Notes under the pieces: model-generated
Told to the model about the DNA's origin: nothing
The model's database searches: none
The model's input: only the letters and a program-made list of their open reading frames with translations
Part shown: one piece after another, positions 1 through 28,738 of the stretch
Layout of the letters: every line of letters starts with the position of its first letter
Numbering within the stretch: position 1 is the stretch's first letter
Translations under genes and position numbers: made by a program
Assembly (NCBI GenBank): GCA_025594325.1
Contig: JANHCV010000002.1
Coordinates: forward strand, 434,001-498,000
Reading direction: 5' to 3'
From: Blastocladiella emersonii ATCC 22665
Lineage: Eukaryota; Fungi; Blastocladiomycota
Length of the DNA: 64,000 nt

Positions 1-2548
1 ACTCAGCCTCGGACGCGGCCATGCTCGCGATCGCGGCCAGGACACCGACGTGCATCTCCTCGACCGACGGCAGGATCTGCTCGGGCGGCAGCAGGAACCC
101 GTACTCGCCAATGTCGCGGAGCTATGAGAAGGTGCAGGGTGAGCGGCGACGGCGGCGCGATGGTCTCGGGCGCGGCGTAGCGTACCTCGACGGCGAACGA
201 GTACGTGACGTTGGCCTTCTGGAACATCCAGTCGGTGCCTGACCCGCTCGTCTACACGAACACAGAGTGAGCAACCGCAGCACTGCCGCCCTCCCCAGTC
301 GCTCGCTCTCATACCGGGTAGATGGTCTTGCACACGTCGCCCGTGACAAACTCCATGCCATGGACCGAGTACACGCCGTCGGCGCCCGCGACCGCGGCTT
401 TCGCGAGCCGGGGCTGCGCGGGGAACGAGTCTTCGCAGTTGTACCCGTACGGGTACATCCACAGGAGGCTGTAGCTGTGGGTGTCGAGGGCGAACTGGAG
501 CGCGCCGCCCGTCTCGCGCTGGAAGGCGGTCACGAAGTTGACGATGGCCGTGGCCTCGGGCGAGCTGCCGGGCGCGGTCCCGCGGAACGTGTCGTCGCAC
601 GCGTCGGGGGAGGAGGCGTACAGGTCGAGCGGGTCGCTCCATTCGTCGGTCGGGAAGCTACACGGTGCGGGAACGAGTGAGGGTCGGTGGTCACGGTCAC
701 CATGGTGCTTGGGAAGCATACTTGCGGTTGATGTCGACGCCCATGCACTCGTCAGCGTAGACCTCCGTGTTCTTGCGCCACTACACCCGCGAGCCGCGCG
801 TCAGTTCAACCCCAACAGGCAATCGGTCGGCGAGCCACGTACCAAGCGGTCGAACGCGAACGAGTACTCGTACCCGTCGGGGTTGAGCATGGGCGCGATG
901 ATCAGCTCGTACGTGTCGAGGAGCGCCGTGACGTGCGGGTCGGTCCCGTACAGCGCAGCCCACACGTCGAGCAGGTTCAGCAACACCGACTACAACGTGT
1001 TCGAGCGAGATTTAGCCACCAGCCAGCGAACCAGTCCTCGTGCGTGCGCGTACCGGCGCAATCCACTCGCGCGCGTGCAGCCCGCCCGAGAAGAAGATCG
1101 CCGGCTTCCCCGTTTTCGGGACCGTGACGCCGCTGACGTTCATGGACCCGAGATCTCGCACGGGCGGCGCCGTGAGCCGCGCCCACAGCAGGTCGCGGCC
1201 CTCGTACGACTTGCCCATGGACGCGACCGTGACGAGGTCGGGTTTGGCCGCGGCGAGCCGCGCGAGGTACGCCTTCATGTCGGTGAAGTTGAGGTACCGG
1301 CCGGCGAGGTTGGCGGCGGCGCCGGCCGAGGTCCAGTTAAGCGCTGGGCGGACGGTGGGTTCCGGACGCGGCGAGGCTGTGGTGGTGGTGGAGGAGGTGC
1401 CGCCGTCGGTCGCGGTCTCGGTCTCGGTCGCCGTATCCGTCTCGGTGGTGGTCGATGACGAGCCCGTCGCGGTGGGATCGGGGACGGTCCGCGACCCGTC
1501 GCCGTCGGTCGACGTGGGCGACGGAGACGGCGAGCCCGAGGTGACGCTGGCGGATTGATATCGCCGCGGCGCGACGCGGGACGAGGTCGCGGGTGGCGGC
1601 TGTCCCGCGCACGGCAGCGAGCTGGATGAGGAGCCAGGCAGTGGCGTCGGGTCGACGACGGGCGTGGCGATAGTCCACGACGCGGACGCGCGTGAGGTGG
1701 CGACGACCGAGAACGCGGTCGTAGTCCCGGGCAGCACAGGAGCCGTCGCGACGTCGGCAAGCACGTCGGCGAATGCGCGCGTCGCGAAAGTCCCTACGGC
1801 GGCGACCTGCACGTCCGGGATGAGCGTGTGGTACTCGGCCTCGGGGAAGCGTTCGCGGACGACGGCGAGCAGGTCGTCGCACACAAGGAGATCCATTTCG
1901 ACCGATGCGCTCTCGGCATCCTCGTCGTCGTCCTCGGGCTCCTCGCTCGGCGAGCGGGGACCGATCCGACCGCGGCGAGGGCGAGCGCGGGTGCGAGGTC
2001 CCGCGTGGGAGCGGATGGTGGCGGCAACACGTTCACGTTGCCGTTGTGCGCTGCTGGAGCTCGAGGTGCTCTTGCGCGTGCTCCACACGTCGATGCCGTA
2101 GTCCTAGACGCGGCGTGATGCGGGTGAGCCTCGCACTCCCGAAACCTCGCATCCACGCGTTCCGTACGTGGGCAAGCTTGCGCAGCACGCGGGCGTCGCG
2201 CTTCGAGTCGAGGAGGAGGCGGATGAGTCGCTGGTTGTTGTATCGGACGCGTGTGCGCGGTTTCGGGCCTGCGCCACCGCGCGCGCGGGGCCGGCGCATC
2301 CGCGCGGCGAACGCCGAGATGCGCACGGCACCACCCTCCGCCTCCGTCGCCGCAGAGGCAACGCGAGGGGTAGCCGGCAACGCGTCCGCGCGCGGGAACG
2401 ACGGGCTCGCGATGATCAGGGCGAGGACGGCCACGGCGGCAAGGGCGAGCGTGACGACGAGGCGGGCAATCCCCGCGCGCTCCATGCGCGCACGAAGAGT
2501 CGGCCGCGCAGCGGTGCGAGTGGCGACGAGGTGTCGGAGCGAGTCCAT
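1..2548 (-). CDS. Secreted M14 zinc carboxypeptidase, multi-exon; C-terminus reaches the window edge
   Basis: N-terminal hydrophobic signal (LVVTLALAAVAVLALII), HAREW zinc motif, NPDGYEYS, WRKN..GVDINR, DTHSYS, ELRDIGEYGFLLPPEQI, assembled across GT-AG introns (e.g. 990-1053). Start may be 2548 or the next Met (MERAG). Confidence 0.9.
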
Positions 2549-4217: not shown

Positions 4218-4698
4218 GGGGTGAGGAGCATGGGGTGGAGAGCGCCCGACGTGCGTGGTGAGCTGCGCCGACCAACGTTCCTGCCGCCCTCGCACAGCTG
4301 ACCGCGATGAAATGAGCGACGCGTGGCACCCACCGGTTTTTCGTCGCCGCCAACACATTGAGCGAGGCCACCTCACTTCCGATCCCTGCCCGTTTACTCC
4401 CGAGGACATCCGATGGCGGCGCCCGCACGAACGCGCGAGCAGCAGCGGCCGGTGGCTAAACGAGGCAGGTCGGGCCACGCGGAGCGAAAACGGGGAGGAG
4501 CGCTGGTCGGTGGCAAACGCGAGCTCGCTGCCTCTTTCTCGCCCGCCCACCGTTTCGGCTCGGAACCGAGCTGACGCTCGCCCCGCGGCGGCGTGGTGAG
4601 GGCTGTAAAGCGGGCGGAGCCCTCCGCAGTCGACTCCCGCTCTCCACCGCCGTCGGTTCGACCCGTTTGTTCCTCTCCGCTACGCATCAACACCAACC

Positions 4699-5478
4699 AT
4701 GACCGTCCCCGCCACCAAGACCGACGGCGCCGCCGCCGCCAACCCCAAGCCCGAGACCGTCCCGGCGCCCGCACGTGCTCGCGGCGGCAACGACCAGTCG
4801 GGGACCAGCTGGTTCGTGGGCACTGTCCCGCCGCCGCCCCACCACATGTACAACGCCGCGCCGCCCGCCAAGGCCGGCGGCACCGCGACGGCTGACGGTG
4901 CTGCCGCTCGCGGCTCGGGTTCGACTGCTCGCGGCTCGGGCTCGTCGTCTCGCGGCCCCGCTGGCGCCGAGGCCGCCGCCAAGGACAGCGGCGACGCCGA
5001 GGCCGGCGAGATGCCGCCGTGCTGCTGGAACTGCGGCACGCCGCCCGCCGTGTTCGCTGGTCCCGCGCCCGCCGACGCCGCCGGTCCCGGGACGCGCGCC
5101 TGGTCGCTTTTCCCGCCCGCCGTTCCCGAAAACTGGGAGTCGCCGGCGGGCCACCGCGGCGTCGCGCCGCCCATGGAGGGCGCGCGTGGCGGCCCGCCGC
5201 TGACCCCAGTGTGGTATAACTACGAGCCGCGCGGCGCCGGCGGCGTGCGCGGCTACAGCAACCCGGACCCGTACGGCTGTGGGTGGTTCTACGGCGGCAC
5301 CGGGCTCTGCGGCGGCTCGCGCGGCGTCGCGCCGCCCATGGCCGGTGCGCGCTACCTGCCCCCGATGCGTGGCGCCCCGCAGTACGTGCATGGCGGCGAC
5401 GACGCGTACGGCCCGCCGCCGTCGTGGTTCTACGGCGCCCGCGGCGCCCGCGGCAACTGCCGCTGCGGCGGGTGCTGA
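4699..5478 (+). CDS. Orphan Gly/Pro/Tyr/Cys-rich cassette protein A (putative metacaspase substrate/peptide precursor)
   Basis: Intronless 259-aa ORF with ATG in acc-ATG context. The block 5251-5445 matches 8197-8388 with mostly synonymous differences, which supports this reading frame. Contains PPCCWNCG and PMxGAR repeats. Confidence 0.75.
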   Translation: MTVPATKTDGAAAANPKPETVPAPARARGGNDQSGTSWFVGTVPPPPHHMYNAAPPAKAGGTATADGAAARGSGSTARGSGSSSRGPAGAEAAAKDSGDAEAGEMPPCCWNCGTPPAVFAGPAPADAAGPGTRAWSLFPPAVPENWESPAGHRGVAPPMEGARGGPPLTPVWYNYEPRGAGGVRGYSNPDPYGCGWFYGGTGLCGGSRGVAPPMAGARYLPPMRGAPQYVHGGDDAYGPPPSWFYGARGARGNCRCGGC

Positions 5479-5683
5479 GTGCGCGGTGGTGTCGAATGGT
5501 GATCGCGGCCGGGCGGCTGCCCGCGTGGATCGTCTCGTTTTGTGCTCGATTGTCTCCCATCCCTTGTAACAAAACATCTCGTTTGCGTTTGTGCCTACCT
5601 ATCAAGAACCCTTCTCTCCTTGAACCGAGACCACAACCGCCGTTTGAAGCGCGACCGCGAAAGAAGTTGCGTGGGCTGAACGC

Positions 5684-5701
5684 GTGAGTGGCGCAACGCG
5701 T
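5684..5701 (+). promoter_or_regulatory. 18-bp element GTGAGTGGCGCAACGCGT, copy 1 (copy 2 at 7476-7493)
   Basis: Exact 18-nt match located ~310 nt upstream of the metacaspase ATG and ~340 nt upstream of the gene C ATG. Confidence 0.5.
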
Positions 5702-5918
5702 GCTCCCCGCGATGCGGGCCGTCGACGCTCCCGTCGCCGGGCATGTTGCCGGTGAGTGCCGAACGAGGAGCTAATGCGAGTGGAGCATCCAGCAACGGGC
5801 AGCAACGGCGAGCGGTTGAAGAGGGCAAGTCGGGCGTTCCGGCCGGGAACACGGGCGAACGCGAGCGCTCTCCGTTCCCGCGTTGGCTTCCCTGGATCCC
5901 CCAACCGGAGCACCGGGG

Positions 5919-5928
5919 CTATATAAAG
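5919..5928 (+). promoter_or_regulatory. TATA-like box upstream of the metacaspase
   Basis: ctatataaag about 70 nt upstream of ATG 5995, in otherwise very GC-rich DNA. Confidence 0.55.
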
Positions 5929-5994
5929 CCGGCGGCGGCCCTCGGTCTCCTCGCTTGCTCCTGCAACAGCCAGTACTGCTGCGCATCGACCATC

Positions 5995-7287
5995 ATGGGT
6001 AACAAAGCACGCTGCTTCGGGCTCTCGTACCCGACTGGCCAGGGTGCCAACCCGATCCCGGGTACGCTTGCTCAGCCCACGGCATGACGACGGGCCAGTC
6101 GCTCAATCTCCTCCCGCGACCCGCATCTAGGCTGCGACGTCGACGCCAACAACATGGCCAAGATCGCGCGAATGATGGGCATCCAGGACGTGGTAGTGTA
6201 CAAGGACGACGTGGCGCCGGTCACGCGCGCGCAGATCCTCGGCGCCCTCGAGGACATGGTCTACAACGCGTGCGCCGGCGACACGCTGCTCTTCTCGTAC
6301 GCCGGCCACGGCGGCCAGACCAAGGACGAGTCGGGCGACGAGTACGACCTGCTCGACGAGTTCCTCGTGTGCGCCGACGGCATGATCCTCGACGACGAGG
6401 TGCGCGCTCTGCTCGCGTGCCTCCCCGCGGGCTGCCGCATGGTCGTAGTTTTCGACTGCTGCCACTCGGGCGCCATGGTCGACCTCGAGAACAACACGCA
6501 CGAGCTCCAGGCCGAGATCGTCGCGCTGTCGGCCGCGCTCGACTCGCAGGAGTCCATGGGATTCACCACCGGCGGCTGCTTCACCTCAGCAATCATGCGC
6601 GTGCTCGCCGAAAATAACGGAATCTCGTGGATCGACGCGGCGCCGCTCATCGGCGAGTACGACAACATGCGCTCGCAGAAACCCGTCCTCTCGTCCAACA
6701 TCCCCGACGGTACTATTTGCTCTCGCACTCCGCTCGGGCCCGACCAGCTCACTCACCTTGTCCTTGCGAGCCTGGTAGCCCTCAACAAGCCCGCCTTCGC
6801 GCCCGTCGGCACCTTCGCCGACGCGTCCAAGGGCTCGCAGTTCGCCTCCACGGTCAACCCGTTCGCATCGGCCGAGGAACAAAAGCAGGACGCGCCCGGC
6901 GCGCCCGCCGCCGCCGCGTCGACGGCCACCGGCAAGACCCAGACCGCCGCGCGCCCGGCCCCGTACCGCGGATACCCGTACTTCATCCCGTACGCCAACA
7001 CGCAGTTCTACCCGTACGGCGTGCCGATGACGGGTTTCCGCGGGAACGACTGGTCGCCGTCGCCCGTGTACGGCTTCGGTCCGTTCGGCCCCTACGGCGG
7101 TGGCCGCGGCGCTGCGCCGTGCTGCTGGAACTGTGGTGCGCCCCCGGCCGGCTTAGCTGTCCCTGCGCGCCCCATGGAGGGTGGGGGTGCCCGCAGCGCG
7201 GGAAGCTGGTTTTCTCCCTGCCCGAGCGGCCGCGGATTCGCGCTGCCCATGGAGGGCGCCCGCGGCCTCGCCCGCTGGCTGTTTTGA
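5995..7287 (+). CDS. Metacaspase (peptidase C14, type I-like) lacking an N-terminal prodomain, with a C-terminal cassette tail; exons 5995-6061, 6131-6709, 6779-7287
   Basis: GCDVD, SYAGHGGQ (catalytic His), DESGDEYDLLDE acidic Ca-site region, ILDDE, VFDCCHSG (catalytic Cys), p10 FTSA..QKPVLSS. Introns 6062-6130 and 6710-6778 are GT-AG and keep the frame. Confidence 0.92.
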
Positions 7288-7475
7288 CTGATTCGCCTTG
7301 TTCGATTCCCGTCGTATCGCCCGCTCCCGTCCCTGAGTATCACATCGTCTCAACAGAACCCCTGGTCTCAAACTTTGCGCCTCCTTCCTCCTACACCCAG
7401 GGCTCTTTCTTCCTTGAGGCACACGGTCGCTGCCACCCCTGTCGCTGCGTGGAGCGTCGCGTCCAAACTCAACAT

Positions 7476-7493
7476 GTGAGTGGCGCAACGCGT
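7476..7493 (+). promoter_or_regulatory. 18-bp element GTGAGTGGCGCAACGCGT, copy 2
   Basis: Identical to 5684-5701. Confidence 0.5.
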
Positions 7494-7818
7494 CTCCTCA
7501 ATCTGCCACAGTCCGCCTGTCACTTTGAAGTCGCATGTCTCGCTGGTCGCGCGGCTTTTTGAGACCACAAAAGCGGGCGAATGTTTCCCGAAGAAAGCTG
7601 GGATTTGAGCGTGAGCCGGGGTTCGGTGGGTTGCCGAAAGCGGAAGGTCGCTGCAGAAACGGGGAGAAGGCACCTGTACGCAAACGCGAGCACCTTCGTT
7701 CGTCGCTCACCGTTCCCGCGGGCCGCCCGGGCGCTCTAAAGTCGGCAGAGCCCCCGCGCTACCCACCCGCGCTCTCTTCGCGGCTAGTTCGACCAAAACC
7801 CTCTCCGCATCAACAACC

Positions 7819-8496
7819 ATGACCGTGACCAACAACAACAACAAGCCCCAGTCCGGCTCGCGCGGCGCCGGCGGTCCGGCCCGCGGCGCTCCCGCCGAGA
7901 CCGAGACCGAGACCAAGCCCGCCACCCCCAAGACCGATTCAGGCGACGCTGCCGGCGACGACAGCGGCGCGCCGCCCATGTTCGCGTACGGCCCGCCGCC
8001 GTGCTGCTGGAACTGCGGTGCGCCGCCCGCGCCCGTCATGTTCGCCGGCCCCGCCCCACCCGCCATGGCCGGCGCTCGTGGCTACTTCTTCGGCCAGAAC
8101 GTAGCCGATCGGAGCTTCGCGCCTCGCGCGGCCGGTGCGCCCCGCTCAGGCCGCCCGTTCCCGCCCGTCCCAACCACGTCCCCGGGCGCCCGCGGCGGCT
8201 ACTCGAACCCGGACCCGTACGGCTGCGGGTGGTTCTACAACGGCACCGGGCTCTGCGGCCCGCGCGGCGTCGCGCCGCCCATGGCCGGTGCGCGCGACCT
8301 GCCGCCCATGCGAGGCGCACCGCAGTACGTGCACGGCGGCGACGAAGCGTACGGCCCGCCGCCCTCGTGGTTCTACGGCTCCCGCGGCAGCACCGAGCCC
8401 GCCATGTCGCGCTGCGGCGGCGCTGAGGAGCATCGCTGCGACCCGTGGACTCGCCGCCCGCCGCCGGGCTACTTCTACGGCGGCCTCTGGTGCTAG
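7819..8496 (+). CDS. Orphan Gly/Pro/Tyr/Cys-rich cassette protein C, paralog of 4699-5478
   Basis: Intronless 225-aa ORF with the same start context (gcatcaac..accATGACCGT). Shares PPCCWNCG, GYSNPDPYGCGWFY.GTGLCG, GVAPPMAGAR and GAPQYVHGGD.AYGPPPSWFYG.RG with gene A. Confidence 0.75.
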   Translation: MTVTNNNNKPQSGSRGAGGPARGAPAETETETKPATPKTDSGDAAGDDSGAPPMFAYGPPPCCWNCGAPPAPVMFAGPAPPAMAGARGYFFGQNVADRSFAPRAAGAPRSGRPFPPVPTTSPGARGGYSNPDPYGCGWFYNGTGLCGPRGVAPPMAGARDLPPMRGAPQYVHGGDEAYGPPPSWFYGSRGSTEPAMSRCGGAEEHRCDPWTRRPPPGYFYGGLWC

Positions 8497-27548: not shown

Positions 27549-28738
27549 GACAATGTTCTGCTTGAGGCTTAGGGGTAACGGGAGAGAAACTGGCGCATCG
27601 ACCGTCGCCCTCGAGGACGCGCAACCGGTGCAGCGGCCGCAGCGCGTTCCCAGGAAGTGTGCGGTGCGCGGTGCGCGGTCGAAACGGAAAATCGAAGATG
27701 TACCGCAAGGCATGACGCTACCGGTCGTACTGTCCCCCGATGAACTCCACAAGCATTTGGTCGCAACTTGAGGCATACCGTGCGGTCAGAATGTCAAACT
27801 GCCCCTCATCGTAAACTATGTTTCATACGGCTCAACAAGCTTCAGGTAGTTATCGGCAGCCTCGCACATTCATGGGGCCGTTTCGGAACTTCAGGAAAAC
27901 CTCTTGGCAGTGAGCTGACGCGCCACACTTGTGAGCTGGTTCGAGACACGACGCGTTGCGCCACTCACGTGCTTGTCTCGCACGCTGCTGCCACACGTCT
28001 CGCAGCGTGAACAGGAGGAGCAAAGGAACCGTGCGGTTGATGGCAGTGCTAACCTTCGCTGCAAGAGCTATGTGGCTCCTGTTCTGCGCAAATTCTGTTT
28101 TCATACAGTGCAACAGTCCAAGGCTGTGGCTGTTCGGTGTAGCCGGCGGCCGTGAGAGGAGGATTTAACCTGTGGCACTATATTTATTAAGGATCAATGG
28201 TTTTTTATCGATTGTTCCATCCGACGATCATTGGGATGTGATCCCAACTCAAAGGGCTCCCGTTTCCGTCACGATCGCGACGCTCAGGGCCACCGTCAGG
28301 GCCGCGCGTGTATCCCACCCTTCAAATCCATCCATGGTCGATTGGCTGGGACAAACGTCTGCGGACACGCCAAAGCAGACCATGGGTTTGGTCGACAAAG
28401 CGCGGCATTGTCTCACACCACCTGTCTTGAGCCGCGTTCGGGGGGATCCGGTACACTGACCCTCTATTCGCCTCGTCGCTCTCGCATGTGCAGCCGGTCA
28501 CTGAATGCAGCGGGTCACTTCCATGTAATGGAATCGCAAAATGTATCTTCTTCAGAAATTCGCACTCGTATGCATTGCGATCTGCGTGCTTCAGTGCCTG
28601 CATCCCGTCGCTGCGGATGCTGCGTTCAAGATCGCAGTCAACTTGCCATTTGACGATCCCGGTGCGGCATCATGTTAAGTTAACGTCCTCAATCTGGCTC
28701 ACGAGCGCCAGTGCCATCATCCAGGCCTTGGGCCGACC

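Follow-up and report, generated by a model that had tools for sequence, protein, structure and literature searches.

Arginine-glycine-punctuated proteins fused to or encoded beside metacaspases in Blastocladiella emersonii as candidate metacaspase substrates

We analysed a 64,000-nucleotide stretch (the window) of contig 2 of the Blastocladiella emersonii ATCC 22665 genome (GCA_025594325.1; JANHCV010000002.1, positions 434,001 to 498,000), in which three genes on one strand encode a metacaspase with a long C-terminal tail (MC3) and, on either side of it, the stand-alone proteins A and C. Together with a third stand-alone protein, D, and the tails of two further metacaspases, MC4 and MC5, these form a family of six members (A, C, D and the tails of MC3, MC4 and MC5), all within one genome. 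Since a cysteine module of the family occurs both fused to metacaspases and adjacent to them, an arginine motif is confined to the family, disorder is predicted for these regions and the blocks between arginines are under strong selection, we read A, C, D and the tails as cognate trans and cis substrates of the metacaspases, with the shared CxxC module PPC(C)WNCGAPPA as a possible docking element. We hold this reading tentatively, as one that is plausible and still short of probable.

Members of the family and their metacaspases

The stand-alone genes adjoined a tail-bearing metacaspase in all three cases, at distances of 517-565 bp and at two loci on different contigs, whilst no family neighbour was detected beside MC4 (locus L001) or beside the paralogs MC6 (L003) and MC7 (L004). 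Gene D (P0075, H9P43_006325), encoding 236 amino acids (aa), lies on contig 7 (L002), convergent with MC5 and 565 bp from it. Like A and C, protein D begins with MTVPATK, carries the PPCWNCGAPPA module and a PHMEGAR unit, and ends in Cys. The module, PPC(C)W[NH]CGAPP in its general form, was present in five of the six members and is degenerate in MC5, where it reads YWNCSRGAAPA and occurs twice. The combination of this module with aromatic/Gly/Pro blocks punctuated by G-[A/S]-R|G (the bar marks the candidate cleavage site), fused or adjacent to a metacaspase, sets these proteins apart as a new family. Blocks of 10-30 residues come after the module, each with Arg as its last residue and most often with G-[A/S]-R|G at the boundary, and family regions are composed of 17% Ala, 16% Gly, 15% Pro, 11% Tyr/Phe/Trp and 5.6% Arg. 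Features of the window locus, in window coordinates, were as follows.

4699..5478, +, gene A: 259 aa, intronless (P0002); stand-alone member, N-terminus MTVPATK; Gly after 12 of 16 Arg
5014..5049, +, gene A PPCCWNCGTPPA module (CxxC), common to the family
5146..5442, +, gene A Arg-delimited block region: PMEGAR 10-mer, two 24-mers and PMAGAR unit
5995..6064, +, MC3 exon 1 (P0003, H9P43_002083, 384 aa)
6065-6130, +, MC3 intron 1 (GT..AG)
6131..6709, +, MC3 exon 2, catalytic domain (PF00656, PDB alignments, pLDDT >90)
6295-6318, +, MC3 His motif SYAGHGGQ
6451-6471, +, MC3 Cys motif FDCCHSG
6710..6778, +, MC3 intron 2 as annotated: 69 nt, frame-preserving and stop-free
6779..7287, +, MC3 exon 3, C-terminal tail, predicted disordered
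6820-6840, +, MC3 tail, conserved linker SK|G (candidate site)
6961-6996, +, MC3 tail, conserved YR|GYPYFIPYA
7114-7149, +, MC3 tail APCCWNCGAPPA module
7234-7263, +, MC3 tail GFALPMEGAR
7819..8496, +, gene C: 225 aa, intronless (P0001); stand-alone member; Gly after 7 of 16 Arg
7996..8031, +, gene C PPCCWNCGAPPA module, common to the family
8194..8385, +, gene C Arg-delimited blocks, paralogous to A 5251-5442

MC3 matched Pfam PF00656 (E 4.6e-15; bit score 56, cutoff 21) and aligned with Yca1, AtMC4, TbMCA2 and AtMC9 in the PDB, matches that identify it as a metacaspase (peptidase C14B). Its catalytic dyad, His82 (GHGG) and Cys133 (DCCHSG), is intact and was invariant in a 51-sequence alignment, in which Asp27 and Asp131 were also conserved; by analogy to TbMCA2, we take these two residues to form an acidic S1 pocket for Arg/Lys. 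The prodomain that marks type I metacaspases is absent, as the chain starts 3 residues before the first catalytic strand, and the low-complexity region of MC3 is C-terminal, unlike the N-terminal prodomain of that type.

MC3 has two close paralogs in the genome, MC4 (P0004, contig 2) and MC5 (P0005, contig 7), which likewise have no prodomain. In all three the catalytic domain and linker are approximately 90% identical, followed by long, low-complexity C-terminal tails that differ from one another. Each of these tails holds exactly one Lys-Gly, the conserved linker SK|G, and further along a conserved [YF]R|GYPY[FL]IPYA. MC6 and MC7 are tail-less or acidic-tailed paralogs. The shape of the tail motif [YF]RGYPY[FL]IPYA, beside RG-rich sequence, resembles the R-x2-5-PY of a PY-type nuclear import signal. 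A further likeness, which may be coincidence, links the catalytic DCCHSGA (6451-6471) to the tail PCCWNCGA (7114-7149), both reading CC, aromatic or His, polar and Gly-Ala.

AlphaFold2, run with 51 homologs, modelled MC3 residues 1-222 with a predicted local distance difference test (pLDDT) score above 90 and the tail (residues 227-384) at approximately 35. The model of protein A, built from three aligned sequences only, had a mean pLDDT of 46 and no secondary structure. The MC3 tail and protein A are thus predicted to be disordered, and therefore protease-accessible. Signal peptides were absent from the stand-alone proteins, whose N-termini are Ala/Pro/polar (MTVPATK...) with no hydrophobic stretch, and likewise from the enzyme. 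The C-terminus of each stand-alone protein is an aromatic/Gly stretch whose last residue is Cys (..CGGC, ..LWC and ..FFC; A 5452-5475, C 8467-8493, and D at L002 12232-12260 on the reverse strand), which does not constitute a CaaX box.

To the extent of the searches made, Blastocladiella emersonii is the sole organism with this family. A word-indexed search of C against 5.8 billion proteins related A and C only to each other, and a hidden Markov model profile of A, C and the tail, run against 1.84 billion representatives, returned the window's own three proteins only. The family profile of A, C and D found no relatives outside this genome, the ESM Atlas search no family relative, and metagenome scans with the family profile and a metacaspase profile no orthologs. 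Nor did the protein, profile and ESM Atlas searches detect homology of the family to the plant PROPEPs or to other known proteins. As no orthologs were found outside this genome, paralogs were used for the conservation tests.

The arginine-glycine signature and selection on the blocks

Pooled over the six members, Gly follows 44 of the 80 Arg residues, against 12.8 expected (binomial P = 1e-15), and within each member the Arg-Gly excess went beyond chance in shuffle tests (A, P = 5e-5; C, 0.006; MC3 tail, 0.004; D, 2.5e-4; MC4 tail, 0.026; MC5 tail, 6.5e-4). The pooled context of Arg has Gly at -2 in 41%, Ala or Ser at -1 in 52% and Gly at +1 in 55% of cases, and the full G[AS]RG string occurred 16 times, against 0.45 in shuffles. 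Elsewhere the signature was lacking: catalytic domains and MC6/MC7 hold 0-1 RG, other long open frames of the genome hold 72 RG among 1061 Arg (observed/expected 1.05), and a scan for RG-enriched frames over approximately 133 kb of the genome returned family members alone. The sites carry a single Arg, with KR and RR essentially absent from the block regions.

A sequence-only reading of the window had reported Gly-started, Arg-ended peptides of a conserved 24-residue length, and of this observation the peptides, their positions, the RG counts and the RG excess held, whilst the conserved length did not. The five 24-residue peptides translate exactly (5251-5322, 5371-5442, 8194-8265, 8314-8385 and 6970-7041), and the counts of Gly after Arg were correct (12 of 16 in A, 7 of 16 in C, 5 of 9 in the enzyme tail). 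Recurrent 10-mers were also found as reported, at 5158-5187, 5323-5352/8266-8295 and 7234-7263, except that two copies of GVAPPMAGAR are followed by Tyr or Asp and so lack the right-hand R|G boundary. It is true that the first unit of A and C stays at 24 aa through compensating changes (one Gly gained at the start, one residue lost before the final Arg in the alignment). However, the paired units of A and C lie in paralogous DNA of 91-93% identity (the A blocks against C 8195-8388), leaving only three independent 24-mers, and in trials with randomly placed sites such a triple coincidence arose in 2% (lengths of at least 15) to 10% (any length). Nor do the paralogs preserve the length, their units measuring 19/11/19/12 (D), 12/16/16 (MC4) and 29/14/16/8 (MC5).

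Repeated units with identical protein sequence were found in D (two copies of 19 aa), the MC4 tail (two of 16 aa) and the MC5 tail (two of 36 aa and two of 11 aa), separated by 5, 4, 10 and 2 synonymous changes, respectively, and by no non-synonymous change in any pair. With repeat proteins identical despite 21 synonymous changes in total (21 synonymous versus 0 non-synonymous), the substitution pattern indicates strong purifying selection on the sequence that separates one Arg from the next. The repeat blocks were chosen for being identical, which biases this count; even so, on its 10 silent and no replacement changes, the 36-codon block of MC5 cannot be read as neutral. Whole-unit synonymous divergence (pS) was 0.36-0.41 in D, MC4 and MC5, segments between the repeat blocks diverge, and the Arg boundaries within the repeated MC5 unit are all conserved. 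Repeated cores with diverging spacers thus characterize D and the MC4 and MC5 tails, and not A or C, whose blocks are single-copy; over the 63 codons alignable between A and C, synonymous divergence (dS) was 0.20 and non-synonymous divergence (dN) 0.07 (dN/dS 0.34). Between paralogs, the blocks are wholly different.

The catalytic domains of MC3, MC4 and MC5 diverge by a dS of only 0.19-0.25 and are thus younger than the repeats within the tails (pS 0.36-0.41), a pattern that suggests gene conversion of the catalytic part across paralogs on different contigs while the tails diverged.

Candidate substrates and alternative readings

Metacaspases cut only after Arg/Lys (PMC10235996). Once activated, the enzyme would cleave its tail in cis, beginning with the conserved sites SK|G and YR|G, and would cleave the neighbouring proteins in trans after recruitment through the shared module. 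The products would be short linear peptides, forming a defined set and each ending in Arg. We infer that cleavage occurs, that it occurs at these sites and that fragments, not the intact proteins, are the functional form. The scheme would resemble a cytosolic precursor system without a signal peptide, such as AtMC4-PROPEP1. A further step, which we consider unlikely, would make the metacaspase a dedicated maturase of multi-block precursors, fused or neighbouring, that yields paralog-specific and lineage-specific Trp/Tyr/Cys/Pro-rich peptides acting as signals, damage cues or toxins.

Several points weigh against A, C, D and the tails being substrates. MC4 has no family neighbour, and the adjacency seen at the other loci may reflect later duplication of a single ancestral gene pair. 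The family comes from a single genome without orthologs, and its conservation was assessed among paralogs only. All three sequencing runs listed are DNA. Precursors usually pair a conserved leader with a variable core; A and C show the opposite pattern, conserving the putative core half and diverging in the N-terminal half. The G-[A/S]-R|G context also differs from the one published metacaspase signature compared, that of AtMC9, which has a basic P3 and an acidic P1' (PMC10235996). With an acidic P1', the specificity of AtMC9 gives no support to Gly at that position. Finally, RG-rich, aromatic, disordered sequence is also typical of self-associating or Arg-methylated low-complexity domains.

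This last point leads to the main rival, a self-associating low-complexity domain. The tails and A, C and D would be Arg/aromatic stickers that co-assemble in a condensate, aggregate or scaffold to place or regulate the metacaspase, with RG as a contact or methylation motif; we judge this possible, if somewhat doubtful. The Ala/Gly/Pro/aromatic composition and the predicted disorder are as expected of such domains, and a module common to the enzyme tail and its neighbours would fit homotypic binding. Low-complexity domains, however, usually conserve composition only, and blocks of 16-36 residues that remain protein-identical at a pS of approximately 0.4 are held more strictly than that. The family is likewise no classical RGG/GAR box, in which RGG/GRG are clustered: RGG makes up 7 of the 44 RG, and Gly precedes Arg at 10 of the 80 sites. 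Wholly different blocks in each paralog argue against a single common partner. Precedent within the enzyme class comes from Leishmania LmjMCA, whose Pro-rich C-terminal domain binds itself and partners (PMC4632311). Blocks identical within a protein and unrelated between paralogs fit gene-specific peptides, as expected under the substrate reading, better than a generic sticker, and do not amount to proof.

Calpastatin, a disordered multi-repeat inhibitor of calpain, exemplifies another arrangement, in which A, C, D and, in cis, the tail would be pseudo-substrates that fill the active site through their many Arg residues and so keep the Ca2+-dependent protease buffered or inhibited. The enzyme does have disordered, many-sited proteins encoded beside it and bears a similar tail, and metacaspase latency is kept by a segment of the enzyme's own chain in the active site (PMC10235996). 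An inhibitor-like feature could nevertheless not be identified, Pfam, protein, profile and ESM Atlas searches gave no homology to known inhibitors, and a diversity of blocks is needless for inhibiting catalytic domains that are approximately 90% identical, so that we regard this arrangement as improbable.

That the genes are artefacts of annotation or non-functional, fast-evolving GC-rich frames, whose RG would stem from repeat DNA rich in GC, is very improbable. Their 74-77% GC, the lack of homologs outside this genome and the DNA-only sequencing runs would suit such an origin. Against it stand the 21 synonymous and 0 non-synonymous differences of the repeat blocks and the A/C dN/dS of 0.34, the start context and upstream TAAAG-type element conserved in A, C and D, and the absence of RG excess from other frames of the same GC-rich genome. 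The substitution pattern, in our assessment, already largely refutes it.

Last, the sequence-only reading had proposed that the metacaspase acts as a transpeptidase, re-forming the R-G bond to release head-to-tail cyclic 24-mers, some of them disulfide-looped. Arg-delimited, selected blocks tied to the adjacent metacaspase survive from that interpretation; the 24-aa length, the transpeptidation and the disulfide loop do not. Gly-started, Arg-ended units do exist, related clan CD legumains (asparaginyl endopeptidases, AEPs) cyclise peptides (PMC5834244), and metacaspase re-ligation has been put forward as a hypothesis (PMC10235996). Yet the unit length is not conserved, several repeat units begin with His or Asp rather than Gly, no demonstrated metacaspase transpeptidase was found in the accessible literature, and nothing in the sequence points to cyclisation or separates it from plain hydrolysis. 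A disulfide loop in situ is unlikely because precursors and enzyme are without signal peptides, so that an oxidising compartment is not expected. AEP-type precursors, moreover, have Asn/Asp at P1, a C13 enzyme, a conserved N-terminal Gly and a recognition tail at the C-terminus, whereas here P1 is Arg, the enzyme belongs to C14 and units start with Gly, His or Asp. Of all the readings, we give this one the least credence.

Comparison with known systems and further features of the loci

The closest functional parallel to the substrate reading lies in plants, where AtMC4 frees Pep1 from the signal-peptide-less PROPEP1 by cutting after Arg69, a peptide of approximately 23 residues being released after Arg (10.1101/2020.03.09.983940). 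AtMC4-PROPEP1/Pep1, along with AtMC9-GRIM REAPER, resembles the Blastocladiella arrangement in pairing a Ca2+-dependent Arg/Lys-specific metacaspase with a cytosolic precursor that has no signal peptide. The Blastocladiella family differs from AtMC4-PROPEP1 in having no homology to it, in its many sites per protein, repeated blocks, enzyme-fused module and gene adjacency, and in that its cleavage is a proposal. Kinetoplastid metacaspases (LmjMCA; TbMCA5-type) share the order of a catalytic domain and, C-terminal to it, a low-complexity domain rich in Pro, which in LmjMCA is released at Arg, self-interacts and binds partners (PMC3047009, PMC4632311). LmjMCA differs in its N-terminal targeting segment, stand-alone tail paralogs beside its gene have not been reported, G[AS]R|G punctuation has not been described for it, and tails of its type are not homologous to those of MC3, MC4 and MC5.

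Among fungal peptide systems, the precursors of KEX2-processed KEPs, alpha-factor and dikaritins carry several identical or near-identical cores, separated by basic sites and differing between genes (PMC6339444, PMC7329392). Repeated identical, gene-specific cores with divergent spacers are thus common to KEPs and our family. KEPs, however, have signal peptides, dibasic KR sites and a subtilisin-like Golgi protease, in contrast to the single-Arg sites, absent signal peptide and candidate cytosolic cysteine protease found here, and without signal peptide and dibasic KR/RR sites the family falls outside KEX2-processed or multi-core RiPPs (peptides made by ribosomes and modified after translation). 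Fused and split substrate forms are also known from the borosins (OphMA), in which the core sits at the enzyme C-terminus in some loci and in a separate neighbouring gene in others (PMC7878506; 10.1101/2021.12.24.474128). The borosin enzyme is an alpha-N-methyltransferase, not a protease, and no tailoring enzyme is evident at the Blastocladiella loci. RGG/GAR-box proteins share disorder, Gly/Arg richness and aromatic residues with the family, which instead has Ala/Ser/Pro rather than Gly at -1 and conserves its blocks as exact sequences.

To our knowledge, few metacaspases of fungi and protists have been assigned physiological substrates, and the few dedicated metacaspase-precursor pairs described are all from plants. 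In the present case, the genome itself singles out candidate substrates, through a module both fused and adjacent, a sharp site signature and strongly selected blocks. If cleavage holds true, metacaspase-driven peptide release would exist outside plants, and a P4-P2' motif would be defined for a fungal metacaspase. If it does not, the family would still illustrate cleanly that selection can act on the exact sequence of a low-complexity domain.

The window locus region ranges from 59 to 77% GC, genes A and C reaching 74-77%, and introns of the locus genes are short and of the GT-AG type. Retention of MC3 intron 2 would place 23 aa between the p10 region and the tail. The three listed sequencing runs derive from DNA of the same sample and cover introns and intergenic DNA. 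In two of the three, depth nearly disappears over 4700-5460 and 7870-8480 (genes A and C), a dip that is probably sequencing GC bias and not a deletion because the third run covers both genes fully.

Other metacaspase genes include a tandem pair of short ones at L003 (4590-5521 and 6001-6925; 290 and 287 aa), of which the second (P0006) reads DSCSNG in place of DCCHSG. Upstream of A in the window lies an M14 carboxypeptidase gene (309-2088, reverse strand) that contains one or more introns and an insert rich in Ser, Thr and Pro. In A/B-type M14 enzymes, the specificity position is Asp in the B-type and Ile in the A-type. The position reads Thr here (GSGTDW) and another gene lies between M14 and A, leaving a role as an Arg-trimming partner unsupported.

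Regarding upstream sequence, a TATA-like GCT(N)TAAAG...GGC.GAGCCC element lies approximately 70-95 bp 5' of the ATG of A, C and the metacaspase (window positions 4602, 5918 and 7733), and the sequence directly before the start codon, CGCATC.A..CAACCATGACCGT, is common to A, C and D. An 18-bp element, GTGAGTGGCGCAACGCGT, occurs at 5684-5701, 7476-7493 and 27951-27968 (reverse strand), approximately 310 bp 5' of the metacaspase ATG and 326 bp 5' of C, and also approximately 155 bp 5' of D. Allowing up to 3 mismatches, we counted five copies in the window against 0.17 expected, seven at the MC5/D locus and none at the MC4 locus. Given this dispersal, co-regulation specific to the cluster was rejected, and the element is probably a common promoter element or a small repeat of the genome.

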